NCBI GenBank assembly: GCA_946965045.2
Contig: OX337234.1
Span: 3,596,001 to 3,660,000 of the forward strand
DNA from: Epithemia pelagica
Taxonomy: Eukaryota; Protista; Bacillariophyta
Reading direction: 5' to 3'
DNA: 64,000 nt
Part shown: positions 15,062 to 38,470 of the stretch, piece by piece
Layout: each line of letters opens with the position of its first letter
Numbering within the stretch: position 1 is the first letter of the stretch
Position numbers and translations under genes: made by a program
Notes under the pieces: model-generated
What the model saw: the letters and a program-made list of their open reading frames with translations, nothing else
What the model was told of the DNA's origin: nothing
Databases searched by the model: none

Positions 15062-16446
15062 AAACCCTCGGTATCAGTGTCCACTGCTTAGCTGTTTTTT
15101 GTCTGTGCCACCTTTACAGGTTCCCAGGTGGACACAGACAGCATTTTTCGTTTTTCGTCTGTCTGTCTAACCATTAAAATTCCTCAGGGCTGAAGCAAGG
15201 CCAGCGTGCAAGTGACAGTTGACGGTTGGTGGTTGTCCTCGCCGGGTCACCACGATTCAAATTTGGGCATCCATCATCATCTCAACACCTGTCACAAAAA
15301 CCCAAAACCGAGCCAAATGCTTGACCATGACGGGGGTGAGGTGAGAACAATGGATGGATCATGCTGGACTGAACCGTTTCTCTCTATTGCTGCTTATTAC
15401 TTATCTTGTTGTCTCTTTTCCCTTTTTCTCACGCATCACTGCTTCAGCTGTCTTTCCTATTGTTCTTGCATGATCCTTTACTTTTGTCTCATTTCGTACG
15501 AGTAGATGACAAGCCGCCAGATGTCAACTGGAATATCTTTTCCTTGTCGTAATCGTTTGTTGTTTGATTGTTTTTTGGCTACTGTCATATGCTCTATAGG
15601 ATAGATTATTCTCTCTCGTCTCTCATCATAGCGTCATTCTCAATCATTTCTCAACGCTGTTGTTTTTGCATCAAATAGATGGGAAGCCATCTTGCCACAC
15701 CCTACTGACCAATTATCATATCCTACCTAGGTAGTCGACACAGAGTGCTCAAAGTGAGCGGTACAAGCTTGTGAGAGCTGTTCTGTTGTGTTTTCATAGC
15801 GAAACTGAGGGTCATCATCGTGCTCACAACAAAGAACAAAGCTGCAACGAATTCACCAATTCACAAGGCTCAAAAGTCTCATGGATGACAAGCACTGGCG
15901 TTCTACTACTAGTAAATAAACAAAAGAATGTCTAGAGTATAGAGTTTTTTTAATACAATCAAAGTTATGGCGCTCAGCAAAAACCAGTCATTTCTGTTCG
16001 ACAAGAATGAACAATGGCAAGTAATGAGCTGCCCAGCGACTAAACAGATGAGTAGCGTCTCCCACGAGCAGAGCAAACAAAAGTGGCAAGTGGCAGTGAG
16101 CATGAGTGATGTCATTGACAACATGGCAATTGGCAATGGATCAAGCTCACCTGGAAAGCCAGTAACATTCGTAAGTAGTAAGTACGATGTGCTTTGGCAA
16201 AAGAAAAGAGAATGTGAGCTTGCCCCGAATTATGCAACAACCAACCGTCATCCACCCAGGGGACGCTTGTTGGGCTTGCGTCCGTTTCAAACGTCGAAAA
16301 ATTCAGCTGGGCATGCGTGTCAATTTGTACTTTGATAATTTCTATTTGCATCAAAAGCGAAAAATGCTGTCTGTGTCCACATGGGAACCTGTGAAGGTGG
16401 CACAGACAAAAAACAGCTAAGCAGTGGACACTGATACCGAGGGTTT
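15062..16446. mobile_element. Non-autonomous DNA transposon, 1385 bp, with 89-bp TIRs
   Basis: 15062-15150 (aaaccctcggtatcagtgtcc...) is the reverse complement of 16358-16446 with 2 mismatches. No long ORF and no clean TSD found. Confidence 0.85.
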
Positions 16447-18454: not shown

Positions 18455-19165
18455 TTACTGGAAACCACCATCTCTTTTGGGACCACGAGGCATTGGGAAA
18501 AGGAGAACGACATCAACAAGTCATGGTCGAGGTCGACGCCTGACGAAAAAGCAAGTCCAAAACTGGCACAAGACCGACTGGAACAAAACCAAGGCTGCAA
18601 GTCCAAAAACCTCGTACTTGATCGAAGGTCACACGATGCAAGTGTGGTACAAACCAAACTCCGTGCATGCCACCACACCAGGTTCCTCTATCCTCGTGGT
18701 TTCCTTCAAGGACAATACTTATAGTGCAAACTAAACGCACCATCACATACGGAGTAGATTACAAGGTCGAGATAGACCCAGATCAATCCACAAGCAAAGG
18801 CTTCATCGCCACCGGAAACTGAGAGCCTTGGAGCCCTTGTCGCAACGAGTTGGGATTTGAAGCAATCCCATGGCCAAATCGCATTCCATACCGAGGACAT
18901 GAACGGAGAAAGAGGATGATGCGGCCTGGAACGTTGGACCTCCATACATGGAGTATTTACTCCTGTCGTCGCTCTTTGCTATATATAACATGTTGCTGGC
19001 TTTGCAACTTCTTGGAATAAGAGTCGAATGCATTCATCGGCATGTTTGCGGTCCTTTTTGGAACAAACGCTCTGGTGGTGAATTCAAAACAGAATTTGAC
19101 GGAGCACTTTGTCACAGATTTATCGACTGAACGAACTCGTAACGACAGACAGAACCACTGTCTTG
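18455..19165 (+). pseudogene. Decayed partial duplicate of the 13573-14556 gene and its 3' flank
   Basis: Collinear shared blocks gggaccacgaggcattg, cgatgcaagt.tggtacaaac, gagagccttggagcccttgtcgcaacga, tcgtcgctctttgc and cagaaccactgt. Frame is broken and the 5' part is missing. Confidence 0.85.
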
Positions 19166-19345
19166 AGTTCCATGGAAGATCAATAGCATTGGAAGCGGAG
19201 GAATGAGTTTGATGGCTCAAACGACAGATGGAATATTGATCGATGAAAATTACTCTTCTGTTTTCGCAGGACAATAAAGTACTCCTAAGGGAGTAATAGG
19301 AGTAGATAGATATCCAACCACCAACCATAGTCGAATGGACCTTTC

Positions 19346-19595
19346 AATAAGATAGCCATCCTACCTTGTCGGCTAGCAGAGAGCTTAACGCATGTGCAGT
19401 TGTTCACGTCTTTCCGTTCTTTATCTCCTATCAATAAGATAGCCATCCTACATCCTGGCGGCTAGCCGATGTGCAGTTGTTGACGTCTTACCGTTCTTTA
19501 TCTCCTATCAACAAGATAGCCATCCTACATCCTGGCGGCTAGCAGAGGGCTTAACGCATGAGGAGTTGTTGACGTCTTACCGTTCCTTATCTCCG
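19346..19595. repeat. Three imperfect tandem repeats of 77-86 bp
   Basis: Unit starts aa(t/c)aagatagccatcctac recur at 19346, 19432 and 19509. Confidence 0.9.
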
Positions 19596-19662
19596 TTGTC
19601 CGTCCATAGTCCATAGTCCGAAATGCGAAAACATCCCATGTACGTGTCAGGGTTGTAAATCT

Positions 19663-19873
19663 ACTTTAATAGCCAGGTTGGGACGAGGAGGAGCTAGGGT
19701 GTGAGGAGTGGCTTAACTCCGAGAAGGGCAATAGCGACGAGGAGTGGACTGCCCCTGTGAGATCCGCGTAAGCGGATCGAGGGGGCAGTCCACGACGAGA
19801 AGCTATTGCCCGACGAGGAGTTAAGCCACGAGGAGCGCCCTGCGACGAGGAGTCCCCCGGGGCTATTAAAGTA
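19663..19873. other. Interrupted long palindrome/hairpin in the hAT left subterminal region
   Basis: Nested inverted arms tactttaatagcc, gtggcttaactcc, gggcaatagc, gtggactgcccc and gatccgc around a GTAA loop (19768-19771), separated by purine-rich GACGAG-type spacers. Confidence 0.9.
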
Positions 19874-20182
19874 TGTTAGCTTCCTTTGTCACGAGGAGTC
19901 GTGCGGGCGCACCCTAGGTAATTTTCGGTCTTCCTAAGTGATCGTTTATCTCTATCGATACTTAGTAATAGTTGGCCTATTTAGCTTTTTACATTCGCGC
20001 CGGTACAGTGTTAGTTAGGTATCTTGCTTGCGTGCTTGCGCACCTTATCCGATTGCTCGCGTTTCTCAATAAGCAACATACTGTCGTGCTTGCGCAACAA
20101 ATCCGATGGCTCGCATCTATCAAATAGGTACATACGACAAGTCGTGTTGTTTACATAGGCGTGACACAGGAATACATAGGTA

Positions 20183-20608
20183 ATGTCTATATATTACTTA
20201 GATCCCCCACCCCCCAACGGACATTCCCACGATAATCTCTCACAGACGACACATTTTGTGCAACAACAATGCAACAACATGATGAGAAAAGGAAGACAAC
20301 CGACCATGGTGACTCCTCCTCCTTCTGGTGGAGTTGCTCATGCTTCCAAACAGGTTGATTGTGGAGTCATAGACCTTTGCACCCCTCCTGATGTAATAGA
20401 TCTTTGTAGTTCGTCTTCGTCGTCTAGTTGCTCATCAGACTCTTCGGGCGAAACTCTCGTCTTTGTCACCAAGGACAATGCAACAGACGAATGGGATGGC
20501 AATCTCTTTCGCCGCTCGGAACTCTACCACGACTGTACTGGGTCATCCGACGACTTCAGCACCTGTAGTTCCGACCCTTGGATCATGGAAATCCTACAGA
20601 GACGGTAA
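20183..20608 (+). CDS. Small hypothetical protein with two VIDL SUMO-interacting-like motifs; may be spliced at gtaagt 20606
   Basis: 141-aa ORF containing GVIDLCTPPDVIDLCSSSSSSS. Confidence 0.4.
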   Translation: MSIYYLDPPPPNGHSHDNLSQTTHFVQQQCNNMMRKGRQPTMVTPPPSGGVAHASKQVDCGVIDLCTPPDVIDLCSSSSSSSCSSDSSGETLVFVTKDNATDEWDGNLFRRSELYHDCTGSSDDFSTCSSDPWIMEILQRR

Positions 20609-20839
20609 GTTTTCGCCGCGTTTCCCACCATTGTCGTGTGTTTTCGTTCCAGACGTCTTCCCAAAATTTCAAACCACCTGCCGTGCGCGCGCGCATGGTT
20701 GAGTCACTGTTCTGTTTCCTACTGATTCCTACGTGTAACCTACGTGTCCGCACTTTCTCGCAAGTGTCACCGTCTTCACTTTCCTCACCCTCATTTTTCA
20801 TTGTGCATCGTTTTTTCATCGTCGTTTCACAGCCTGACC

Positions 20840-23800
20840 ATGGCGACTCGACAATCTCGCCGCCAACTGGAGCGGGCGGCCGCAAGAAACAATATGGACG
20901 CCACAAACTCAACCAATAACGTGAACCCGTACCGAAATCCCGGCCGCCCACCCAACAACCGTGCCAATCGTCCGCCATTAACGGAAGTGAACCTTCCTCC
21001 TTCCCGAAATCCTCGTCGACAACCACAACAACAAGACAACATCCAAGCTACAGAGCAATCAAAGTAAGTGACAGTATGTTTTGTTTCTATTCTTATCTGT
21101 CTCATTCTAACCACCATGTTTCCTTTTTCCCTTCAGCAATGTTGCGAGGCCTGATCCTTCTTCCCGTCGTCACCAGATCGAAGGTCTCGATCTTCCCAAT
21201 GGCGCCAACGACGCCCTTCTCAACGCCGCAACGGTTGTGGAATCTTGCAAAGTGGATACCAAGCTTGTATCCCAAGCTTTGGTCAAACGGAAGCATCTGA
21301 CATGGGATGCCGAAAAGGGCTCCATGCGGATTGGTGAGGTCACCTTCAACCCGCCCACCATGAACTCTTCTCGTGCACGTTCGTTGGCCGCCTGGAGTCA
21401 ATATTGTCGTCTGTCTCCAACCATATACGGCAACAACACCTTCACCATCCGTGACCTCACTGGATGCAAGGCGTCATACGACAAAGAAAAGGCCGCCTCC
21501 GTCAACAAATTTTTGGAGTGTCTTCAAAAGCATCACGAGATGCACTTTCTTCTTGAAATCGTCGAAGATATCGATGAACTGTCGGGTGGAGATACACCAA
21601 CGCCGCTCCTCTTTCTTGCTCTCCGCGGAGTGAAGACTCCATCGAAATTGACATTGTTGAATAGTTGCGTAATGGTTTTTCTCGTGAACCATCGAATGCG
21701 GGGTTTCAATATGGAAACGGATTCGGTGGAGGACCCCAAGTTTTTCTTCCAGCCCAACACAACAATGAAGATGCTGAACCATCTCTTTGCTCTTCTTAAA
21801 ACACACGGGATCGTGATCGCTCAAAGTGATCTCAAACATGGGCTTGGCAATTACCATGCCTACCTTGCCGACATTTGGAACAAGGCAGCCCTCGTCCGAC
21901 CCGAATTTGGCCGCCTACCCAATCGTGCACCAACGGCATTCGACGACGAAGAAAAGATGCGGACATGCGAGCCGGAGCTTCGGCCGTTCGAAGACGGCGA
22001 GTATTCCACGGCTTTGAGCATGGGAGTCTACAAGACTTCCCGAGACTTCGGTCTCCGCGGCCCAGAAGTAAGTTGTTGTTTGTTGTTGTTGTATTTGTTG
22101 ATTGTCGCCGTTGTTGTTGCTGCTGTTGTCTAACAGTTTGGTTGTTGCATGTTGTCTCCAGATAAGACTACTTAAAGTATCCGATTTAATTTTCAAGGCG
22201 TGTCTTGACAAATCGTACGGAATGTTGGCTGGGCTTCCCGCGATTATTCTCAAAGAATCTGTGCTTGAGAAATCGTCGCACCTCGCGACGAACAATCTCG
22301 CCTTTGATCGAGTCGCCAACGATACACAAGACTCGTCGCACATGATCATCGACAACCCAGATGATAAGTTTGCGACGTACAAGATCCTCTTGCACATCAT
22401 GAAAGTGGCGCACCCGCCAGGATGGCAGGGTCTGCTGTTTCTAGAGCAGATACCCGCAAAACACCTCAAGGCCCGCAAGGATGGTGCGAAGCACCTCGGT
22501 TGGACTGAGCTCGTCCCCGAGACTTCACAGAATGACGCGGATGGATCTGGCTTCAAGTGTGCGGGTAGATTGGGCGTGAACTGGCCGTTGAGGAATGCCC
22601 GTCAACTTGCCATTCGTTGCAAGTTTGACAACGCCGAGAAGGTGACGTTCCGGACCGGCCGACGCACCGGAATCTCGAACGTTGCCAACTGTGGAGTACC
22701 ACAGAAGTCGTCGAACTCCTTCGCCCGTCACAAGTCAAGTGAGGTCAACGTACTGTACCAGGACGTCTCGAAAGAAAATCATGTTCGGACCGTCACGGCC
22801 AACTGGTACCGTCCACCCGAAAAGAGCGACGAGGCCGACAAAGAAAACACGAAGAATGGTACGTAGACTCATTGCATGAATCACTCTTTATACTTTGTTA
22901 CTAACTACTCTGCTATTATGTTTAGATGAGAAGGGATCCAAGAAGAAAGAGTCAAAAACCGCTTCATCCCCCTCGTCCTCGTCGTCGTCCTCCACCGACA
23001 TTGAGGCCTTTATGAAAAAGGCCAAGAAGAAGATTCGCCGTCGCAAGGCGTTGCAGCAGCTCAAGGCTGCCAAGAAACAGAATGACGATTCGTCCATCGA
23101 AGACGAGGATTCATTGGCGCGAATCCTTCGTCTCTTGGACGACAAACCATCCAAGTCGTCCAAGTCGCAAACCCATGGTAAGTTGATTGTTGCTTTGTTG
23201 TTTTCTTGGTTGCATCGATCTCATTCCGTCTTCTCTTGACCACAGACACCAAATCCAAGAAAAAACGCAAGAAGAAGAAGAAGAAGAGTAAGTCGATCGC
23301 GGACTCATCATCATCGTCATCTTCATCGGATGGCATGCTTGAAGTTCTTTCCCGATGTCAAAAGAAAAAGAAAACTTCTCCGCCCTCTACCATCGTTGGT
23401 ACGTAGATTGTTTTGTTTTGTTTTGTTTGATTGTTGCTTTATATGTTCTCACTGCCATTCCCTGTTTCATCACCTTCGTCCACTCCAGTGGCTTCTTCAA
23501 AGCCTCCTCCACCACCTCCAGTCGAGCATGAAGCGCCACAACCGCCACCACCAGTCGTTGTACCACCACCAACAACAACAACAACAACAACAACCACGGT
23601 GGCCGTGCAACCACCACCAGCTACGTCAACAATGGACCAACATGCACCACCTCCAAACAGTGCAACAGTCCAAGCACCAACAACAACCACCGTAACAGCC
23701 ATGAAACAACCTCCACTGCCATCTACTGTTACGGCCACGCATCCACACCCAACAGCAACGACTGAGCAACAGCCACCACCACCACCACCACCACCACCAA

Positions 23801-24342
23801 CCATTGCGACCACGGAACCAACGGTATCCGCTGCAGCTCCACCAGCCATTGCGACCACATCAACGTCGCAACCACCTCCACCACCACCAACCATTGCGAC
23901 CACGGAACTGCCACCACCACCCACAAATGTGCCATCGTCAACGGCCCTTGTTCCGACGGAACACCACACCAGCCACCACAATCCCTCTCAGAATCATCAC
24001 GGTGGATATCATCGCAATGACGGTAGTCGAGACCGCGGGGTTGATTGTCGTGTGGAGGAGCACCATCGTGTTGCTTATCATCGCAACAACTGGTACTCCC
24101 CACCTCCACCACCATCCGACTCGCCGCCATATCATCCTCATCATCATTCCCACCACCATTCTTCCCGAGGATACCACCACCGCCCGTACACTCCATCGCC
24201 ACCACCCCCACCGTACTACCGTGACCACATCCACCACCGTGGTGGTGGATACACTCCACCACCTCCACATCATCATCATCATCACCATCATCGTGGTTCG
24301 CGTTACCATGGCGGTAGCCATGGATACGGCTACCACTATTGA
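20840..24342 (+). CDS. Tyrosine recombinase (Crypton/DUF3504-like), 6 exons: 20840-21063, 21137-22067, 22162-22858, 22926-23177, 23246-23398, 23489-24342; 1036 aa
   Basis: Box I FGLRGPE|IRLLKVSDL is joined across an intron; box II is TFRTGRRTG...ARHKS...VLYQ. All five GT-AG introns are phase-consistent. Lys-rich, then Pro/Thr- and His/Pro-rich tail. Confidence 0.85.
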
Positions 24343-24843
24343 AGTACCATAGTATTCGGTACGTTTGCTGTTGTTGTTGCATTCTTGTTGATTGCTGTAT
24401 CATTGTTCTTACCCCTTTATTCACTCTTTTTGACAGATTGATGTCGCTATTGCTCTTTGCATGACCATTTGGGTGGTGGTCTCTAGCTTGACGTCTCGAA
24501 AGGTACGTGAGAATTAGATGATGACACTTGTTCCGCGTTCCACTCCACGTTACGTACCAGTTTCTCACACGTTCACGATTTTTGTAATTCTGTCTTGGCA
24601 TGAAATTTCGTGGTGCATCTCTTTGCTACTGAATTTTCCGTGTCGTGTGAAAACTCGTCTGTGTCGTGTTTCAATTATTGCCTACATTTTGATTATTGTT
24701 TTTTGGTCTCTGTGTTTCCGTTGCTGTTGCTGGTGCTTGCTGCTTGATTCGTGTGGTGTTTGTTTGTTGTGCTCTTCTTTTTTCCGTTGGTGCACCTCTT
24801 GTTCGCTTTGTGCTCTTTCCCGTATTCTCTCCCTGTGGATTTC

Positions 24844-24894
24844 CTGGGTGTACTACTTTTCTGGGTGTACTACTTTCCTGGGTGTACTACTTTT
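24844..24894. repeat. 3 x 17-bp tandem repeat ctgggtgtactacttt(t/c)
   Basis: Read directly from the sequence. Confidence 0.95.
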
Positions 24895-24937
24895 TCATTT
24901 TGGGCTATTCTAATTTTATACACTAAAATAAAAATCC

Positions 24938-25392
24938 AAGTACAGTAATTTTTAGGGCTTATGTAGTGTGGGTAGCGTTTTGGGAAAGGTACGACGACGA
25001 GTGGTGAAGGTAGTGAAGTACGCACACTCACACCTTGTACTTGACTACTAGTCCTTAAGTACACTAAAACTAGTAGCTGTTACTTTACTCTTATTACTTT
25101 AAGTACGTCTAATGAAAGCATGTACTTTTCTTGTGATACTTACAAGATTAGTCGTCTGTGCTGATTAATTAGCGTACTTAACTTAAGATAAGTAAGTGCA
25201 ACAATCTAACCAGACTTACTTTACTAAGCAAAAGTATCTGTTGCCGATACTGTGCTGGTACTTTAATATCAACAAGTACCACATCATGAGAGTTTCCCTC
25301 GCCTTACTTACTCCAAGTAAGTACCTTGCTGTCTAACCCAAAGTACTTAATTTATAACATTAAGTACGTACTTTCAAGTAATCAAAGTACCT
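24938..25392. repeat. Cluster of AAGTAC subterminal-type motifs (hAT left side)
   Basis: About 9 AAGTAC copies in AT-rich non-coding DNA; these are the reverse complement of the GTACTT motifs at the right end. Confidence 0.75.
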
Positions 25393-25554
25393 ACTTCACG
25401 CATCAATTTATCTCTTACCTGTTACAGTCTGTTACATACTACTGCTCTCCAAGGTACAAGTGCAGCGTTCAGTGCAGTGCATAGTGCATCCTGTGTTCCT
25501 TGCCCAATTCCAATCCCATTTTCCAATCCAAGTAATGAGACATCCCCATTCACC

Positions 25555-27282
25555 ATGTCGATGGATTCTCTCATAGAGGACAATTCTCTTCTGCAATTCA
25601 CATCAACCTGTCACATCGAGTGGTCTCTGTCATGCTGTGACTCATATTCTCTTTTCATTGCGGACAGTATTACTTCATGCATTCTGGCTCCGCACGAGGA
25701 ACAATTACATGCGGTTGTTACTGCCTCTGCCTCCTGGCTGAACCGTAATCAGCATTCGATAAAACTTCTTACTCTCTCGGAATGTCAAGCAAGTCACCAT
25801 TGTATTATACCCAGATTTTCTTTCGAACAACTCCTTTTTCAAGTTAGCTCCCTTATTCTCCAATGGCTCAATGGAACAGACGAACACAACCTTATTTCCA
25901 TCACATCACATGACGAAACAACCGATCTTTATCTTGAAGTAAAATGCACACCGAAGTTCTCAATCTCCCCATGTATGGGTTGTTCCCAGTGCACCTCCTT
26001 TGTCATTGACGAAATCAAGGAATATCCCGACGACTCTTTGCTGAGTATTGTTCTTGCATGGATACAGCGCAATCAAGCCCAATTCGTTGTCACTGATACC
26101 CTAACAGGTGCCTCCACTGTTCCCAACTCAATTGAAATGGTAATGGAAATTTTACTGAATTATATATCGGAAAAGATAACTCAATTACCGACTCCACCAG
26201 ACCCCCTAAACACACCACCCGTGTCCATCCAAGATGTATCCAAAAAAGCCTCTGACGATTCCACCACATCCTCATTATCTCAATCCACGAACTCTGTGCA
26301 GAATACGAAAACATCTTCTCCTAAAAAGCTCAGTCCATCCCGCCACAAGTACCAAACTCGGAAACAGAATGCTTTACTTTCGAGAGAAATCATTCTTGGG
26401 TCAAAATCTCGCAACAAAGTACAATACAATGATGGGAAAGGACCACGTCGGTTCATGCATGGCGACCCATTCAAAATATCCCCAAGTCGCATTACATGCC
26501 CGAATTTACCACTCCGGCCATCCGCAACAACTATCGCAGATCGAGAAGCTTTCCTTGACAAACTACAAGCCTTCCACAACGTGCTTAAAAGTTCTGGACT
26601 CCATTCTCCTCGTGATGCCTGGGAAGAATGGATGGACATGGTGGCAGGTGATGACAAACTAGCGGACAAGGCCTTCATGTGTCTCATAATCATTCTTATG
26701 AGCTTGAGTACAACAGACAGTCAATTAGCGGCATTCATTCCCAAAATATTCTCTGCCGGTGTTACCTCCGCTGATGGTGTTCTCGAAGTGGTAGATCGCA
26801 TTGGAATTGACCCCTTTTGTGCACTAATTTCTCCAGTTGGCCGTTTCCATCAAAATGCCGAAAGGATTGTCCATTCGGCATCGTACTTTGTCACCAGATA
26901 TAACGGCAGAATCCCCAGCGACATATCCATACGAGAGTTGACCTCCTTGTTTGGAATTGGATACAAGACAGCACAAATTGTTGTATCCACTGCATTTGAC
27001 CGAATAGATGGCATCCCATCTGACGTCCATGTTATGCGTTGGTGCGAGGCACTGAAATGGACACCGCCACTTTCAAACGACGGTCTACTCTGTTCGAAGT
27101 GCATAGAACAATGGCTGCCTCCATCAAAATGGGGAATAATCAATCCCCTGTTTGGTGGAATTGGTCAGCTGATACAAAATCCGGAAAAACGTCCGCAATT
27201 GCTAGCATTATTGGACGAGAACGGCTCTGACATGCTACAATCTACGATTCGCCCGGTTCTGAAAGCTTACGGTAAATACTAA
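25555..27282 (+). CDS. HhH-GPD superfamily DNA glycosylase, endonuclease III (Nth)-like, without FeS cluster, with long N-terminal extension
   Basis: C-terminal domain with LTSLFGIGYKTAQIVV (HhH, catalytic Lys) and GIPSDVHV (catalytic Asp). There is no Cys-x6-Cys-x2-Cys-x5-Cys motif. Confidence 0.88.
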   Translation: MSMDSLIEDNSLLQFTSTCHIEWSLSCCDSYSLFIADSITSCILAPHEEQLHAVVTASASWLNRNQHSIKLLTLSECQASHHCIIPRFSFEQLLFQVSSLILQWLNGTDEHNLISITSHDETTDLYLEVKCTPKFSISPCMGCSQCTSFVIDEIKEYPDDSLLSIVLAWIQRNQAQFVVTDTLTGASTVPNSIEMVMEILLNYISEKITQLPTPPDPLNTPPVSIQDVSKKASDDSTTSSLSQSTNSVQNTKTSSPKKLSPSRHKYQTRKQNALLSREIILGSKSRNKVQYNDGKGPRRFMHGDPFKISPSRITCPNLPLRPSATTIADREAFLDKLQAFHNVLKSSGLHSPRDAWEEWMDMVAGDDKLADKAFMCLIIILMSLSTTDSQLAAFIPKIFSAGVTSADGVLEVVDRIGIDPFCALISPVGRFHQNAERIVHSASYFVTRYNGRIPSDISIRELTSLFGIGYKTAQIVVSTAFDRIDGIPSDVHVMRWCEALKWTPPLSNDGLLCSKCIEQWLPPSKWGIINPLFGGIGQLIQNPEKRPQLLALLDENGSDMLQSTIRPVLKAYGKY

Positions 27283-27328
27283 GTTGGTTGAATGTTCATT
27301 AAAAGACTACTTTAGTTCTTCACTGGTG

Positions 27329-30300
27329 TCAATGGTTTTCCTCGTCGTCTTCATTGGTCTCCTCATCGTCCTCATTGGAGTCGTCGTCTCCCACCTCCTC
27401 TTCTTCTGCCTCCTCATTGGCATCCTGGAACTCCTCTTCTTCCTCTTCATCCTCATTCCCATCATGCTCTGAATTTTCATCTTTATCGTTATCTGACAAG
27501 GCATCAAGCAATCTACGAGAGAAGTTGCTCTCTTTTTCCATATTGTCCGATTGTTCATCGCTCCGACCTGATTGAGTCGATCGTTGTTTGTTCTCTTTCT
27601 TCTTCTTCTGTCTAGGAGACCGCCTCAATTCTTCGCTTCCTGATGACCTTTTTCTCGGTGGTGGTGGATTTGTCTTCTTTGTCGTTGACTTGGAACTGGA
27701 TGTTGTTCTAATTTTGGACTGCTTGGCCTTCTTCTGACTCGAAGTTGTTGGTGTTTGGTTAGCCTTCCTCTTCTTCTTTGACCCAGATTCAGATCCTGCC
27801 GTATCGTCCTTTTTTTGGCTCATCGCTTTTCTCTTTCGTTCCTCGACTGCTTGTTTCCTTGATCTTTCTAGTGATTCAAGACGGTCCATTTCTTCCTGTA
27901 GATGAACTGTGATGGCTTCATCTGTGTCGATGTCTTCTTCGACATCACTTTCCTCATTGTGATCACTGACATCAGACAAGTCCAATGATACTGGCTGTAT
28001 GTTGTCTGCTGGCATCGGTACTGCGTCGTCGTTGTTGTCGTCTCCCAAGTCTGGATAGTACTCGTATACAGGTTCCGGTGTGCTACTTGCGAGAATATCG
28101 GTCGGCGGATTTTTCTTTGCGTTGAAATCTTCCAATTCTTTAGTCGCTTCCTTCAACAACATGTTCCTCAGATATTCTGCCTGCTCTGTGTTCTCGAACA
28201 AGTGTGGAGCCCGCTTCTTGCCAGGACCCGAGTGTGCTTCTGCCCCGACTTCTGTCAACTGCGGACTTGTTGCATCTGGATTGTGTTCGTCCCCTACCGT
28301 AGGTGCTTCATTCGCTGTTGTGTTTGTACCTGTGGCATCTTGCCTTGTTGTTGCTTGGTTGTCTCCCCCCTCTCGCGAGTCGTTTCCGATCGTTACATTC
28401 GTAGTATTGCCATTGTTATCGTCGTCTTCGTCGTCCTCAATGACAATCACATCTTGTTCCTTCTTTTGATTTTCTAAGGCAATCTCCCTTTGAACAATAT
28501 CCAATCGGATTTTTCGTGTCAGCTTCTCCATCGCCCTCATCTCGAAGTTCTTGGCGGTAGTTTTGGTCTGCAACTTGTTTTGTTGAAACCACGAACCAAG
28601 GGAAAACACACGCTCTTGGAAGGCGTTTGTGGCGGGCTTCGTGAGCCATATGACAGCTGTTGGGAAGACATGTTGGTAGTTGTCCTTGTTTTTCTCCCAC
28701 CATCCCATGACGTCGAAATACTTTCCCACAACAAGGAAATCAGTATCTTGGCATGCCGCAATGAACTGGGCTTTTTCCGGCCCTTTCCATTTCTTGGACT
28801 CGGTAGTGTATGCCTCAGTAGGGTATTTAGTGATCGCCTCTTGCCATCGACCATCGATTTCTCTTTTACATGCACGACGGAAATCTCGGAGACTATCTTC
28901 GCATGTTTGTCTCAAGACCTTGGCCACACGGGCTTCTTCCTCAGCAGCAGACGCCTTACCAGTAATGTTCAATAATGCTCTCTCGTTCAGTTCCTGAGAT
29001 TCTCGAAAGTTGCGGAAAGCATTGAACTTTTTGAACGGTACATTTGCAGTTGGAAGAGAGTTGGTCGCTTGAGTCGTATTGCTTTGGGTTGTAGGAGTGC
29101 TGCTCTGTTGTTGTGTTGCCATCAACGAACCAATTCTGGAGTACGACTTGTTCGAGAATTTTTTGATCATGTCCCTGAGAAAAAGTTCCTTCACACGGGC
29201 GCCATCGTTCTGATCATACACTCCCAATGATTGGAAGAACTTAACAAAGATGTTTGTCATCAATGGATGGGCCATAAGAGCCTTTTCGGAGTCATCATTG
29301 ATGGAACCACCATCGTCGCGGACTCTACGCCGTTCTGCCAACAAGGTCTTGAACTCAGCAATGATACGTCGAATAAGAGTCCGTGGACCTGCTTTCAACT
29401 CCCCAAAAGACATGGGATCCCGTTGGCGATCTAATTGGGAAATGGTTATGTCTCCATTCCATCGTTTGTTGACTGGTGTTGTAAGTTTCACTGGAAGACA
29501 ACCAATGGAATTGACTGTATTCTTCATTCGATGAGCATAAGACCGGGCGAGATAAATTTGCATTAGGGCAGCGGAAGAGGATCCTGGTTCGTCGGACTGA
29601 ATGGAGATGGAAACCTCCTGTAGTACGACCAAGATTGCCTCGTATTGGGCCAGTGTTTCCCATTGTTCCTGCTGTGGATAACTCTCTTTGAAGTCAGGGT
29701 CGGTCCCAAAGTGACGTGAGGCGTAGTCGTCAAAGCACCATTTGTTCCTCAACAAATACTGGATGGTAAGCACACATCCAGAAACACGTGTTTCATTAGG
29801 TAGCGGAATCTGGACTACGCTTTGGTTCATACGTTCCATTTCTGTGCGAACAGTATCAAACCGGTGGTTTGCCTTCTTGGACATCAACCACGCTGCAAAT
29901 TTTTTGAATTCTGAGTACAGCTCCTCAAAAGCCTTGTTGTCGTCCACCACTCTCTTATCTCTCGTCCGGACAACCAACCCTGTGGCGTGTTTCAAGACCA
30001 ATTCGGCCTTATGCATGTCGCATTTGCCCACATTGGACGAACCCGTTATATATTTCCCTGCAAGCACAGCCGAAGCCGTGTTGTCGTTGACGGACGAGCA
30101 GAGATCACTTTTGTGAAAGCCCACTGTCTGTAGTAAAGAGTGAGTCAGTCGCGCAACTTGTACAGCAGTGTGACCTTTAGTCTGTGCCAAACCAATTGGG
30201 ATGCGATACACGGCACAATTGCGAGGATCACAGAACATGACAGTGACCCCAAGTACATCGTACTTCTTAGCCTGCCACACATCATGGCATACAGTGGCGA

Positions 30301-31183
30301 AAGGGATTTCCTGTCGGCAAACCTTTTTGTAGTGTTGCCGGACACGATAGGAAAGCTTGGACACTGTTCTGATGAAATCTTGATACGAAGCAACACGCAT
30401 GGATGTTACTTTGCGACGACTGATCACCTCAGGCCTGGATTCACGAAGAAGATTCGCATTTTTGATAGCAAAGTCGATCATCTTGCGGAACTCTGGCTTC
30501 TCCACAATAGAAGCGGGTAGGCAACAGTCGTTGACACACTGGTATGTGTGTTGCTGCATTTGTTGTCGAATGTTTCTCTTCGTGATCATTCCAGATCCAT
30601 CGCCACGATACATCGTCATTGTCGTTTGCGTCGGACTAGGTTGTTCTGGTTCGTTCGGATCGTCCTTTGTTCCTGGGATGACGAAGTCTTTGTGCTTTCC
30701 GTCAGTATGCTGTTTTATATTGGAGGGCTTGCCGGTCAGCATGACAACTGCATTAGACAATGGAGTCTCGGGGTCCTTCATACACAACGGGCATAGAACA
30801 CATCGCTTGGCAATGAAGGAAAACGGAGTTTTGTAGTCGGCCTTGTTAGGAAACTTCTTTGCTGCTGAGGCTTGTTCTTTTTGGGCAGCCTTGAAAGCTT
30901 CGTTGATGCGTTGGAAACCTTTATACATGGTCAAATTCTGTGGATCGTGAGAACTCACAAAGGCCGAGAACTGTACCCAGTCAATGTGGACAGCAAATTT
31001 CCAAAGGGGCGACACATTGTGATGTCCAAAGTGGTCGGAAGGTAGCTCTTGACATTTGGGAACAATCTCCTTTTCTTGTAGGATGAACGACCGGAGAGAC
31101 TTCTGTTGTGCAGCAATTACTTTCTCCGATTTCTTTCTCTCAGCATCACGGTCAGCTTTCTTTTTCTTTTGACGGATGGGCAT
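27329..31183 (-). CDS. hAT-family transposase, 1284 aa, uninterrupted
   Basis: BED-like CPLC...QHTDGKH, CHDVW (D), VNDNTAS (D), CDMH (CxxH), and a dimerisation domain WWEKN...PATNAFQERVFS (E). Long acidic/basic tail. Confidence 0.93.
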   Translation of the reverse strand: MPIRQKKKKADRDAERKKSEKVIAAQQKSLRSFILQEKEIVPKCQELPSDHFGHHNVSPLWKFAVHIDWVQFSAFVSSHDPQNLTMYKGFQRINEAFKAAQKEQASAAKKFPNKADYKTPFSFIAKRCVLCPLCMKDPETPLSNAVVMLTGKPSNIKQHTDGKHKDFVIPGTKDDPNEPEQPSPTQTTMTMYRGDGSGMITKRNIRQQMQQHTYQCVNDCCLPASIVEKPEFRKMIDFAIKNANLLRESRPEVISRRKVTSMRVASYQDFIRTVSKLSYRVRQHYKKVCRQEIPFATVCHDVWQAKKYDVLGVTVMFCDPRNCAVYRIPIGLAQTKGHTAVQVARLTHSLLQTVGFHKSDLCSSVNDNTASAVLAGKYITGSSNVGKCDMHKAELVLKHATGLVVRTRDKRVVDDNKAFEELYSEFKKFAAWLMSKKANHRFDTVRTEMERMNQSVVQIPLPNETRVSGCVLTIQYLLRNKWCFDDYASRHFGTDPDFKESYPQQEQWETLAQYEAILVVLQEVSISIQSDEPGSSSAALMQIYLARSYAHRMKNTVNSIGCLPVKLTTPVNKRWNGDITISQLDRQRDPMSFGELKAGPRTLIRRIIAEFKTLLAERRRVRDDGGSINDDSEKALMAHPLMTNIFVKFFQSLGVYDQNDGARVKELFLRDMIKKFSNKSYSRIGSLMATQQQSSTPTTQSNTTQATNSLPTANVPFKKFNAFRNFRESQELNERALLNITGKASAAEEEARVAKVLRQTCEDSLRDFRRACKREIDGRWQEAITKYPTEAYTTESKKWKGPEKAQFIAACQDTDFLVVGKYFDVMGWWEKNKDNYQHVFPTAVIWLTKPATNAFQERVFSLGSWFQQNKLQTKTTAKNFEMRAMEKLTRKIRLDIVQREIALENQKKEQDVIVIEDDEDDDNNGNTTNVTIGNDSREGGDNQATTRQDATGTNTTANEAPTVGDEHNPDATSPQLTEVGAEAHSGPGKKRAPHLFENTEQAEYLRNMLLKEATKELEDFNAKKNPPTDILASSTPEPVYEYYPDLGDDNNDDAVPMPADNIQPVSLDLSDVSDHNEESDVEEDIDTDEAITVHLQEEMDRLESLERSRKQAVEERKRKAMSQKKDDTAGSESGSKKKRKANQTPTTSSQKKAKQSKIRTTSSSKSTTKKTNPPPPRKRSSGSEELRRSPRQKKKKENKQRSTQSGRSDEQSDNMEKESNFSRRLLDALSDNDKDENSEHDGNEDEEEEEEFQDANEEAEEEEVGDDDSNEDDEETNEDDEENH

Positions 31184-31195
31184 GATGATATAATG

Positions 31196-31377
31196 ATTGA
31201 AGGAAGCACTGATGGACAAGAGAGACTTGTTGCTGTTGTTGTAGATTATGAGAGGACAACAAGTTACAAGGGACCGAGAGGCAACAATTGAAGGAAGCAC
31301 TGATGGACAAGAGAGACTTGTTGCTGTTGTTGTAGATTATGAGAGGACAACAAGTTACAAGGGACCGAGAGGCAACA
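31196..31377. repeat. Exact 2 x 91-bp tandem duplication just upstream of the hAT transposase start
   Basis: attgaaggaagcactgatggac...ggcaaca occurs at 31196 and 31287. Confidence 0.95.
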
Positions 31378-31482
31378 ACATTCATCCATGTTGGCATGAG
31401 ACATGGATTGAAAGATATAGGTGCAAGCGATTTTGGAGATGAATGAGAGAGTGGAGAGGCTACTTGCTCCATACTGTGATGT

Positions 31483-31810
31483 ACTTATGGACTTAGAAGT
31501 AGATATATACAAATAATAGTACTTACCGATAGAGCTTTAAGTACGAAGAGAGGAGCTAAGGTACTTGATAGGGGTACTTTAGGTGCCGGTGAGGAGTAAT
31601 GGTACTTGATAAGGGTACTTAAAGGATGAGGGTGAGGGAAGTGGTACTTCATTAAGGGTACTTAAGGTGGAAAAAAAAAGAGACGGTACTTGATGAAGAA
31701 GGCCTTGCAAAAAGTAAAGGAATTGGTATTGATCGAAGGGACTTGGACAAAGGCAAAGGCAAAAGTACTGAAAAAGTACCGTTTTGGCGAAAAATGGGTA
31801 CTTGGTACTT
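31483..31810. repeat. GGTACTT subterminal repeats at the hAT right end
   Basis: About 9 GGTACTT copies between the transposase 5' region and the TIR. Confidence 0.85.
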
Positions 31811-32340
31811 CACAACCCTGGTACGTGTACCGGGGAAAGAGCCCTGAGACAAACAATAAACATGCGCCATAGACCTAGGTGTAGGATAAAAAATGTCATG
31901 TCATTTCACTACACGACACTGATACGATATCACATTGATGTCATACTGCGACACGCACTATACCTAGTCCCGGACGACAGATCACGGGAATTTTGCACGG
32001 GGGGAATGATCTCCAACCTTCAAAGAATTATACTCGCCAGGACATAGTACAAGTAATCATAAGTCTAACATAGGCTCTAGGACTCTAGGAGCATTCAATA
32101 CTGAATATAACAGAGGAAGCATTTGAGATCATCAAACATCTGACATCCTACGCCATAGACGCATCTTACAACTGACGGTGGCTTTGAATCATCCCTTCTT
32201 GGATGGGCAGCCGTCAAGAATGAAAAAACTGAGCTTTTCAATAGGGGCTCACGAAATAGAAGGCAGAAATATGATTGGGTTAGAAAACTCACAAGACATA
32301 GACAAGACATCAAAATACTTAACGAAAACTCACACAAGAC

Positions 32341-36990: not shown

Positions 36991-37479
36991 GGATTTCACC
37001 TAAGATATGGTTGAAGGTAGATGACCAAAGTTGCCACACGAAGGACTTGTCTCGAGGCGTACAAAGTCGATCGAATACACCGCTCTGAGCTCGTTGAGAA
37101 TACATTTTTGCCCACGAGAGTGTCTTTCTACTTAAATGTCAGAGCAAGATACGTTTTTCCTTGAGGAATCTTGCACGGCATCCGTGGCACTTTCACTGCA
37201 TCTTCTTGCAGTAACAGCTTTGTAATTCCAGCAGAGTCAAACCGCAAGCACCACAAAGACTAAAAGTGATGGCAATTCCAACCTGCCTTGTTGCCGGAAC
37301 TCTTGGCTCGCACGGACTTTTTGGGTCTTCCTCTGCCGGAACCAACATTCGCCATTATTTCCCCTCCATATTGGTGAGGCGGCCAGACCAAATTTGGTCG
37401 CGTGTACTGGACACGTGCTAGGGAGAGCTTGCTCTCAAACAGGGTGGCTTTGCCAGCTCTCCAACTGCCAGCAAGCGGC

Positions 37480-38470
37480 CCTGCGTGGATGACGGTTGGT
37501 TGTTTCATAATGCCGGACAAGCACACAACACACAATCCTTTTCTCTTGCCAAAGCACATCGCATTAATGGCATTCCAGGTGAGCTTAATCCATTGCGGAT
37601 TGCCATGACAATTACATTGCTCATGCTCACTCACACTTGTCGCTTTTGCTTGCTCTGCTCATTGGACGAGAGTCTGCTCATCTGCTGTGTCTCTGGCTCA
37701 GCAGCTCATTACTTGCCATTGTTCATTTCTGTTGAAATGAGACCCATAACTTTCATTGCATTTATCCACAGACTATAAACCTTCTTTTCTTTATTTCCTA
37801 GAAATAGAACTCAAGTGCTAGCCATCTATAGAGTTTAGTGCCTTCTGTTTTCGTGTTGTACATCTGTTTTCTGTTTGGAGCACGTCAATGACCCTCAGTT
37901 GCACCATGAACACATGACAGAGCAGCTCTTACAAGCTTGTACAGCTACAAATTGAATCATTCGCTGTTTGACTCTCGATCTAGGAGCTGATAATTAGAAA
38001 GTAGGGTGTGGGAGGAGCAAGATGGAGCCATCTACTTGAAGCAAAAACAACAAAATGTTTGGTCGTTGAGAAATGATTGAGAATGATGCTACAATATGAA
38101 TAGTGAATCATCTATCCTACAGAAGACATGAAAGTAACAAACCAGCCAACAATCAAACAACAAAAGAATTACAAGAAGGGGAAAGGAAAAGATATTCCAC
38201 TCGACCATAAGCAGCTTATACCTAGTCTACTCGTACAACATGAGACAAAACCAAAGGATCATGCATGAACAAAAGGAAAGATTGCAGCAGTGATGAGTAA
38301 GAAGAAAGAAAAGGAGACAACAAGATTAGAAATAAGCAGCAGTAGTGAGAAGTTAGAAGTGATTCAGCCCAGCATGATCCGTCCATGGTTCTTACCTCAC
38401 GTCATGGTCAAGCATTTGCCAGGGTTTTGGGTTTTGTGACAGACGAGAGCGAGAGGGTTGTCCAAATTTA
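37480..38470 (-). repeat. Diverged inverted copy of the interior (about 15255-16260) of the 15062-16446 TIR element
   Basis: Collinear blocks on the reverse strand (gtcacaaaa, ttgaccatgac, tgcatgatcc, tacaagcttgt, aatgaacaatggcaagtaatgagctgc, caaccaaccgtcatccac). The TIRs are absent. Confidence 0.85.

Follow-up and report, generated by a model that had tools for sequence, protein, structure and literature searches.

The 12.2-kb composite in the window, that is, in the whole 64-kb stretch of DNA analysed here, would be the product of two independent insertions, in which a hAT transposon with two genes arrived first and a Crypton-like element integrated later inside its left TIR, a reading to which we give a probability of roughly 90%. 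The boundaries of both elements are fixed to the base, each of them exists independently elsewhere in the assembly, and the composite is unique. All the parts listed by the first-pass annotation, namely the CAGGGTTGT(A/G)AA ends, the 8-bp GTACGTGT flanks, the hAT transposase, the glycosylase, the tyrosine recombinase, and the VIDL ORF, are present where it had placed them. However, its assembly of these parts into one mobile unit combining a DDE transposase, a Y-recombinase and a base-excision enzyme is not supported, since the insertion is nested and both partners have independent copies. The glycosylase is a true second gene of the hAT, but the recombinase and the VIDL ORF, which had been taken as further cargo, belong to a separate 5,358-bp element with six independent copies elsewhere, none beside a hAT, and are therefore not hAT cargo. 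To treat these genes as one mobile unit of three enzymes would lead both annotation and cargo searches astray.

Layout of the locus and its boundaries

The outer ends of the composite, CAGGGTTGTAAA (19648-19659, + strand) and CAGGGTTGTGAA (31809-31820, - strand), share 11 of their 12 bases, and the 64-kb window contains exactly two copies of GTACGTGT, which directly flank both of them. As had been proposed, both the hAT insertion and its 8-bp target-site duplication are genuine, and other copies carry perfect 8-bp duplications of their own. When 250 bp of both outer ends were aligned, no similarity was found past the first 12 bases, which was the first hint of a foreign left end. Of the 12-bp left TIR described initially, the first 8 bases (CAGGGTTG) do belong to the hAT, but the following four (TAAA) start the inserted element and are alike by chance, the true TIR being 16 bp long. 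The internal junctions of the composite read CAGGGTTG/TAAATC and GGTAG/TGAAGTAC (slashes marking the junctions), and the two TIR halves rejoin exactly, no base being lost or gained. The features are collected in Table 1.

Table 1. Features of the composite locus (positions in the window)
Feature	Position	Strand	Remarks
Left 8-bp hAT target-site duplication, GTACGTGT	19640-19647	.	
hAT left TIR, first 8 bases, CAGGGTTG	19648-19655	+	severed from the rest; canonical left end, CAGGGTTGTGAAGTAC
GTTG, target copy of the Crypton crossover core	19652-19655		inside the hAT left TIR
Nested 5,358-bp Crypton-like tyrosine-recombinase element, TAAATCTAC...GGTGAAGGTAG	19656-25013	+	
Interrupted hairpin, about 210 nt, repeated ACGAGGAG loops	19662-19874	+	left end of the Crypton-like element; z -11.6
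VIDL ORF of the Crypton-like element, 141 aa	20183-20608	+	
Tyrosine-recombinase gene, 1036 aa	20840-24342	+	six exons
Recombinase exons	20840-21063, 21137-22067, 22162-22858, 22926-23177, 23246-23398, 23489-24342	+	all introns GT-AG
Crossover core GTAG	25010-25013		right end of the Crypton-like element
hAT left TIR, other 8 bases, TGAAGTAC	25014-25021	+	
hAT left subterminal region	25014-25413	+	14 AAGTAC/GTACTT motifs
Endonuclease III/NTH-like HhH-GPD glycosylase gene of the hAT, 573-575 aa	25555-27282	+	
hAT transposase, 1284 aa, intact	27329-31183	-	within ORF 27329-31300
Perfect 91-bp tandem duplication	31196-31377	.	upstream of the transposase start; shared by L005, lacking in L001
hAT right subterminal region	31421-31804	-	14 AAGTAC/GTACTT motifs
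hAT right TIR, 16 bp, reverse complement of CAGGGTTGTGAAGTAC	31805-31820	-	
Right 8-bp target-site duplication, GTACGTGT	31821-31828	.	

The hAT element and the Crypton-like element

DNA was read for three hAT copies besides that of the window, five of the eight copies being checked through contig lists only. These three copies measure about 6.7-6.8 kb and have an uninterrupted 16-bp left TIR; CAGGGTTGTGAAGTAC is found in all of them (L001, L005, with one mismatch on the right, and L013), while the left TIR of the window is split 8+8. Each is flanked by a different, perfect 8-bp duplication (GTAGCTAC in L001, GTTACCAG in L005, and ATATGGAC in L013), which is what the first-pass annotation had suggested looking for, except that each holds the transposase and the glycosylase only. 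They align to the window only over 25009-31823, the divergent L013 only to patches within 25014-31820, and the segment 19656-25013 is absent from all three. AAGTAC/GTACTT motifs are found 14 times in 25014-25413, 14 times in 31421-31820, and not at all in 19648-20047. No second hAT copy was found inside the 64-kb window: the sole further TIR-like site, at 57658 (one mismatch), was rejected, since it lies in coding sequence and 0.7 such matches are expected from shuffled sequences.

The transposase ORF (27329-31300, - strand) scores 25.6 bits (E 1.1e-5; cut-off 21.4) with PF05699, the C-terminal hAT dimerisation domain, which is also precomputed for most of its homologues. Transposases of hATs have an RNase H-like DDE core with an inserted domain and a BED-type zinc finger, for which a C-x2-C...H-x4-H pattern near residue 170 of this ORF would be a candidate. 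For the glycosylase ORF, the matches are human NTHL1 (7rds, E 1.7e-16) and the nth model TIGR01083 (E 6.6e-17, but far under the equivalog cut-off). The Lys of the HhH motif (GIGYKTA, aligned to GVGPKMA of NTHL1) and the catalytic Asp (SDVHV, aligned to VDTHV) are both present. The C-terminal four-Cys [4Fe-4S] loop is absent, as the stretch following the GQ motif (the last 50 or so residues) is devoid of Cys, so this protein is a relative of NTH, not an orthologue. The clusters of transposase and glycosylase occupy the same eight contigs according to their contig lists, the pair is found in two subfamilies whose transposases are 66% identical, and the dN/dS of the glycosylase is about 0.1. The real multi-gene unit is the hAT plus its glycosylase. 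No description of a hAT with an endonuclease III-like glycosylase was found in the papers open to searching, and the new copy independently confirms the constant link of this hAT family with such an enzyme under selection.

The inserted segment (19656-25013) aligns end to end to six loci, 98.0-99.6% identical (blastn), in unrelated contexts and never beside a hAT. All seven copies have a GTNG left flank, a GTAG right end, and identical ends TAAATCTAC...GGTGAAGGTAG; the GTNG/GTAG flanks are a Crypton-type crossover signature. Mini copies of ~310-340 bp share the left end of the element, with a k-mer depth about 30x that of unique flank, and at L007, L008/L009 and L010 a full copy is followed by a mini copy in head-to-tail orientation, as expected from integration into the element's own junction and as indirect evidence for excision as a circle followed by re-integration. 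Inside the segment, no long terminal repeats were found and no Pfam family was matched by its ORFs, which leaves it with neither the reverse transcriptase or LTR-like repeats that would point to DIRS or Ngaro nor a DDE transposase of its own. The VIDL ORF, which contains VIDL twice followed by a Ser/acidic tract and resembles SUMO-interaction motifs, is open in all seven copies, with too few substitutions for a selection test. Cryptons have no TIRs, their terminal direct repeats of 4-6 bp are thought to be recombination substrates, and their boundaries are hard to characterise (PMC3212892). A target of known pre-insertion sequence is therefore useful, and this Crypton-like family now has base-exact boundaries, a 4-bp GTNG/GTAG core, and such a target in the uninterrupted hAT TIR.

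The recombinase, which ends in a long Pro/Thr/His-rich tail, is encoded by a gene intact in six of the seven copies, where all coding indels are multiples of 3 and the nonsynonymous/synonymous ratio is 0.31; judging by its sequence, this gene is under purifying selection. Searches of Pfam, NCBIfam, and PDB sequences with the window's own recombinase pieces gave no family match. Among its 86 homologues, 4 of the 41 scanned match PF00589, the Atlas places the recombinase next to clusters of Phage_integrase and DUF3504 (score 0.96), and the sole PDB match of the profile is XerA (E 0.044), with RxxR, H, and Y aligned. A Foldseek search of the PDB with the AF2 model (pLDDT 86) gave no significant match (best E 1.5), but the same matches re-aligned by VIA gave a Z of about 7 for Cre. 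All five VIA matches with Z of at least 2 have tyrosine-recombinase or topoisomerase IB folds, including Cre (Z 7.2) and the Crypton-derived domain of QRICH1 (Z 6.0). The candidate catalytic residues are R382, K422, R549-x-x-R552, H575, and Y584, the His of HxxR being replaced by Arg. The product of 20840-24342 is described here as tyrosine-recombinase-like, its profile and structural matches being individually modest.

Order of insertion and alternative readings

According to the proposed order, a hAT of ~6.8 kb with transposase and convergent glycosylase would have inserted by cut-and-paste, duplicating GTACGTGT, and the 5,358-bp Crypton-like element would later have integrated into GTTG, positions 5-8 of the hAT left TIR. 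The substrate would have been a circular intermediate with GTAG, and its recombination with a GTNG target would leave GTTG to the left and GTAG to the right; an excised circle would carry the junction GAAGGTAG/TAAATC. Private substitutions are fewer in the insert (3 in 5241) than in the hAT part (30 in 6724), which is consistent with a later insertion. The reverse order, a hAT inserted into a Crypton, was discarded, since it is the hAT that is split, the Crypton being uninterrupted. The ORF cluster of the Crypton is found on about 9 contigs, which overlap with the about 8 hAT-bearing ones only in the contig of the window, and neither these lists nor the copies read, which are all separate, revealed the 12-kb composite a second time. 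No Crypton-free or empty allele was found in the assembly, where the two flanking host proteins are each on the window's contig only and the locus has a single contig, nor was any piece bridging the junctions found in public runs, whose short contigs break at repeats. Since its left tip keeps 8 of the 16 TIR bases and lacks subterminal repeats, the 12-kb composite is, judging from other hATs, probably immobile for the hAT transposase. The intact transposase and glycosylase genes could still act in trans, and excision by the recombinase across GTTG/GTAG would restore the hAT TIR. The locus is a natural experiment bearing on two questions: whether a hAT end can still be used when 5.4 kb divide it, and whether recombinase excision restores it.

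The matching outer ends and the perfect 8-bp duplication flanking them would also agree with one hAT of 12.2 kb that had captured the recombinase, the small ORF, and the glycosylase, moved as a unit, and made the GTACGTGT duplication itself. Structure alone cannot order this duplication and the arrival of the Crypton, which possibly joined the hAT at an earlier site. A composite of DDE transposase and Crypton is also known in Fusarium, where MarCry-1_FO, with TIRs, TA duplications, and four copies more than 97% identical, moves as a unit (PMC3212892). Here, however, single-unit transposition is very improbable: a second composite is lacking from the copies surveyed (about 8 of the hAT and about 9 of the Crypton), the TIR is whole and the insert missing in each of the three other hAT copies read, the hAT part looks several-fold older than the insert, and a left tip with half of its TIR bases has no subterminal repeats within 400 bp.

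GTAG on the right in all seven copies with a variable left side fits a fixed core and a loose target better than a staggered-cut duplication, and the head-to-tail arrays form at the same junction. Together with the purifying selection, the R, K, R, H, and Y at the expected places, the best fold matches (Cre and the QRICH1 domain), and a Pfam search of the ORFs in which the insert encodes no other enzyme, this makes it improbable that the element was mobile without site-specific tyrosine recombination, for example as a non-autonomous or hairpin-primed element with a recombinase inactivated by the His-to-Arg change, and that GTNG/GTAG is a 4-bp duplication made by another enzyme. In favour of such a mechanism would be the lack of a direct Pfam match for the window's own protein, the RxxR in place of HxxR, the third base of the 4-bp repeat, which differs between sides in four of the seven copies, and the large hairpin at one end. 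That the assembly wrongly joined a copy of the hAT to one of the Crypton is hardly credible, even though both are multi-copy repeats able to mislead assemblers. Both internal junctions coincide exactly with the recombination core, the TIR halves fit with no base lost or gained, the contig is 2.18 Mb long, and 81-96% of the 31-mers sampled from 18900-19700 (flank/TIR/Crypton junction) recur in three public runs of two samples, which may include the reads behind the assembly.

Within the nested-insertion reading, the Crypton family might prefer transposon ends or sequences like its own junction, as the hAT end GGTTGTGAAG resembles the right end of the Crypton, GTGGTGAAG. If so, insertion would disable a TIR that recombinase-mediated excision restores. 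Separately, the hAT glycosylase may remove methylated or damaged bases from the element. We regard it as rather unlikely that the insertion is a non-random, reversible switch on transposons and that the glycosylase strips silencing marks from the hAT.

Comparison with known systems

As in nested transposon insertions generally, a younger element lies inside an older one, whose duplication flanks the whole; no essential difference exists, the one peculiarity being that this insertion is within the TIR itself and could in principle be precisely reversible by the recombinase. The outer element resembles the hAT superfamily (Ac, Hermes, Tol2 type) in the 8-bp duplications of four copies, short TIRs starting with CAG, short subterminal repeats, a C-terminal dimerisation domain, and a canonical size, here of about 6.7-6.8 kb. 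It differs in its conserved glycosylase gene, convergent with the transposase, and in the length of the latter (1284 aa), which has an acidic Lys-rich tail.

The inner element shares with Crypton DNA transposons, above all the CryptonS of stramenopiles, a probable tyrosine recombinase as its only enzyme, with no reverse transcriptase, LTRs, or long TIRs, together with short terminal direct repeats that fit a recombination core, low copy number, a stramenopile alga as host, and non-autonomous derivatives. Contrary to most CryptonS, for which a 5-6-bp TATGG core has been reported (PMC3212892, Kojima & Jurka 2011), its core is the 4-bp GTNG/GTAG, and it also differs in the Arg replacing the first catalytic His, the ~210-nt hairpin at one end, the VIDL ORF, and the head-to-tail arrays with mini copies. 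Lastly, MarCry-1_FO from Fusarium oxysporum and Tec1/Tec2 from Euplotes likewise enclose a DDE transposase and a tyrosine recombinase within one TIR pair; in contrast to MarCry-1_FO, the composite described here is single-copy, both of its partners also occur on their own, and a TIR is interrupted by the insertion.

The left end of the composite

All the features that the first-pass annotation listed for the 12-kb composite (19640-31828), which it read as one cargo-carrying hAT, are present: both ends, the GTACGTGT flanks and four coding features between them (see the table). Across the 64-kb window there are just two instances of the 8-mer GTACGTGT, each abutting one of the outer ends, and even though the counts of the 12-mer and of the 8-mer are each unremarkable, their adjacency at both ends is not due to chance. 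Both the hAT insertion and its target-site duplication are real. Between 81 and 96% of the words sampled from 18900-19700, which spans the junctions, were found in three public runs, which argues against mis-assembly, with the qualification that these runs may be the assembly's own source.

Past their first 12 bases, the outer ends share no sequence, a first sign that the left one is foreign. The right end is dense in AAGTAC/GTACTT motifs; at the left end their place is taken by ACGAGGAG motifs within a large hairpin, and AAGTAC motifs return only 5.4 kb further inward, at 25000-25400. Within 400 bp of the left tip there is no AAGTAC motif, versus 14 at each canonical end. Of the 16 TIR bases, 8 are left at this tip; they account for the real part of the apparent 11/12 match between the ends, the rest being a chance likeness of TAAA to TGAA.

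The uninterrupted form of this end is known from other copies of the hAT. A search with the transposase protein returned 24 relatives from a single ENA assembly, ERZ21939226, in which the window itself is contig ctg1360l (locus L004; 100% over 23.9 kb). The canonical hAT left end reads CAGG-GTTG-TGAAGTAC (CAGGGTTGTGAAGTACGCACAC in L001), versus CAGG-GTTG-[TAAATCTAC ... GGTGAAG-GTAG]-TGAAGTAC in the window. The bracketed sequence is a 5,358-bp insert, and comparison of the copies indicates that it is a separate Crypton-like element, nested in the hAT left TIR, and that this element is the one carrying the recombinase gene and the VIDL ORF.

Features of the composite and its surroundings (window coordinates), and other hAT copies
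Feature	Position	Strand	Remarks
1.38-kb repeat	15065-16443		~91-bp terminal inverted repeats; 98% identical to L005:7017-8396
Tandem units	19340-19594		3-4 units of ~77-89 bp each, directly upstream of hAT insertion site
Outer left 12-mer CAGGGTTGTAAA	19648-19659	+	sequence search of window
Crypton-like insert	19656-25013		5,358 bp
VIDL ORF	20183-20608		141 aa
Recombinase ORF run (exons)	20840-21063, 21137-22067, 22162-22858, 22926-23177, 23246-23398, 23489-24342	+	joinable into a single six-exon gene; all introns GT-AG; product 1036 aa
Recombinase low-complexity part, last exon	23431-24342		~285 aa, Pro/Thr/His-rich; length varies by multiples of three bases
Glycosylase ORF	25555-27282	+	573 aa; human NTHL1, E 1.7e-16; nth model, 6.6e-17
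91-bp tandem duplication	31196-31377		perfect; just upstream of transposase start codon
hAT transposase ORF		-	1284 aa; dimerisation domain PF05699, above Pfam cut-off
Outer right 12-mer CAGGGTTGTGAA	31809-31820	-	sequence search of window
Relative of 1.38-kb repeat	37468-38469		~72% identical
hAT copy L001	25009-31823 (only part aligned)		6,724 bp; flanks GTAGCTAC; transposase 98% identical
hAT copy L005			6,823 bp; flanks GTTACCAG
hAT copy L013			~6.7 kb; flanks ATATGGAC; same 16-bp TIRs; subfamily with 66%-identical transposase

The Crypton-like insert and its genes

The insert aligns end to end by blastn, at 98.0-99.6%, to six other loci (L002, L003, L007, L008, L009 and L010), which have unrelated surroundings and none of which adjoins a hAT; the L008 and L009 copies appear to be alleles. 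The element starts with TAAATCTA in all seven copies, except for the ninth base in L009, and ends with GGTGAAGGTAG in all of them, the final four bases being GTAG throughout. The four bases preceding it are GTTG in the window, L007 and L010, GTCG in L002, and GTAG in L003 and L008/L009. If excised as a circle, the element would carry the junction GAAGGTAG/TAAATC.

A mini copy of the left end comes immediately after the full element, in head-to-tail orientation, in L007, L008/L009 and L010; it starts exactly at the GTAG/TAAATC junction (L007:13770-14079 and L010:10769-11105, with aligned parts of 310-340 bp; also in L008 and L009). The sequence of these mini copies is slightly unlike the left end of the full element. 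Over the hairpin (window 19700-19899), k-mer depth in three public runs is ~30x that of unique flank, indicating that hairpin or mini elements are numerous, far more so than the coding element. The left flank of the L003 copy (L003:7490-7539), GGTAGTGAAGAGGTAG, is similar to the right end of the element itself, GTGGTGAAGGTAG; an earlier copy may have left it behind, or it may be an att-like site that the element prefers. A likeness to this right end is seen in the hAT TIR segment GGTTGTGAAG too, although there the crossover point does not fall in register.

The recombinase gene model is intact in six of the seven copies. A premature stop interrupts the gene in L002, and in L008/L009 the donor site of intron 3 is mutated. 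All coding indels among the copies are multiples of three, and the variable codons comprise 24 synonymous and 24 non-synonymous changes, with a site-corrected ratio of 0.31. In a Pfam scan of its ORFs, the element showed no enzyme besides the recombinase, and in particular no reverse transcriptase.

The lines of evidence suggesting that this gene encodes a tyrosine recombinase are modest when taken singly, but they agree. The Atlas neighbours of the exon-3 piece at 0.96 are Phage_integrase clusters, diatom 'Tyr recombinase' clusters and one DUF3504 cluster. An exhaustive HMMER search gave 86 relatives, with PF00589 reached by 4 of the 41 scanned, and their profile has XerA as its single PDB match, the family R-x-x-R falling on H-x-x-R, RH on GH, and Y on the catalytic Y. 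The candidate catalytic residues would be R382, K422, R549-x-x-R552, H575 and Y584. Foldseek returned no significant match for the AlphaFold model (pLDDT 86); when the structures were re-aligned, five matches reached a Z of at least 2, all of them tyrosine-recombinase or topoisomerase IB folds, namely Cre (7.2 and 7.0), QRICH1 (6.0), topoisomerase I (3.8) and SSV1 integrase (2.3). The QRICH1 domain is a reported member of Kojima and Jurka's Crypton-derived DUF3504 group.

In the product of the VIDL ORF, which is open in all seven copies, the two VIDL motifs precede a tract rich in Ser and acidic residues, an arrangement that looks like tandem SUMO-interaction motifs. Since some published Cryptons carry a gene for the SUMO protease Ulp1 (PMC3212892), a link of this ORF to SUMO may be worth testing.

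The hAT family and its glycosylase

The glycosylase that had been described as hAT cargo is real, and is present in all three other copies, L001, L005 and L013, each of which consists of the transposase plus the convergent glycosylase and nothing more. The glycosylases of the window and L013 are 61% identical, with a dN of 0.27, a saturated dS and a ratio of ~0.1, and the transposase and glycosylase clusters comprise exactly the same eight contigs. Copy content, ratio and this identical distribution together indicate that the glycosylase gene is under selection and forms an integral part of the hAT family. The protein has retained the endonuclease III Lys and Asp and lacks the C-terminal Cys cluster; its N-terminal 370 aa belong to no recognisable family and are ~60% identical between the two hAT subfamilies.

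The window and L005, but not L001, have the 91-bp duplication, which therefore defines a sub-lineage; it may also affect the promoter or 5' UTR. The L005 copy of the 1.38-kb repeat, which looks like a non-autonomous DNA transposon, adjoins the L005 hAT.

The composite and known systems

The proposal of a three-enzyme mobile unit is thus upheld for the hAT, its duplication and the glycosylase, and not for the recombinase and the VIDL ORF, which are carried by the nested element. Other copies of the composite with the same cargo, as such a unit might have left, were not found among ~9 Crypton-ORF contigs and 8 hAT contigs, where the window's contig is the sole overlap, and every copy of either element read at the DNA level outside the window stands alone. 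Ac/Ds and other hATs need both TIRs and subterminal repeats; with 8 of 16 TIR bases and no AAGTAC motif at its left tip, the composite would be a poor substrate for the hAT transposase, or none. Alternatively, the Crypton could have joined the hAT elsewhere, the whole composite then jumping to its present site, a scenario that nothing supports. Private substitutions number 30 in 6724 in the hAT part, an upper bound given that only three hAT copies were compared, versus 3 in 5241 in the insert, which fits later insertion of the Crypton-like element in place. No hAT-free or Crypton-free allele was found, the assembly having one contig at the locus and the public runs yielding short contigs that end at repeats.

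Nested transposons are ordinary; what is of interest here is a glycosylase-bearing hAT family, together with a well-delimited Crypton-like family whose target at this locus is known from uninterrupted hAT copies. MarCry-1_FO is a true DDE-plus-recombinase composite with several copies, whereas the composite described here is a single one. The insert by itself fits the description of Cryptons by Kojima and Jurka (PMC3212892), which lack TIRs, are bounded by 4-6-bp direct repeats presumed to be the recombination substrates, and include a diatom representative (CryptonS) as well as non-autonomous derivatives. It differs from them, however, in its core (GTNG/GTAG versus TATGG), in having Arg in place of the first His in its recombinase, in its hairpin end (z -11.6), and in carrying the VIDL ORF.
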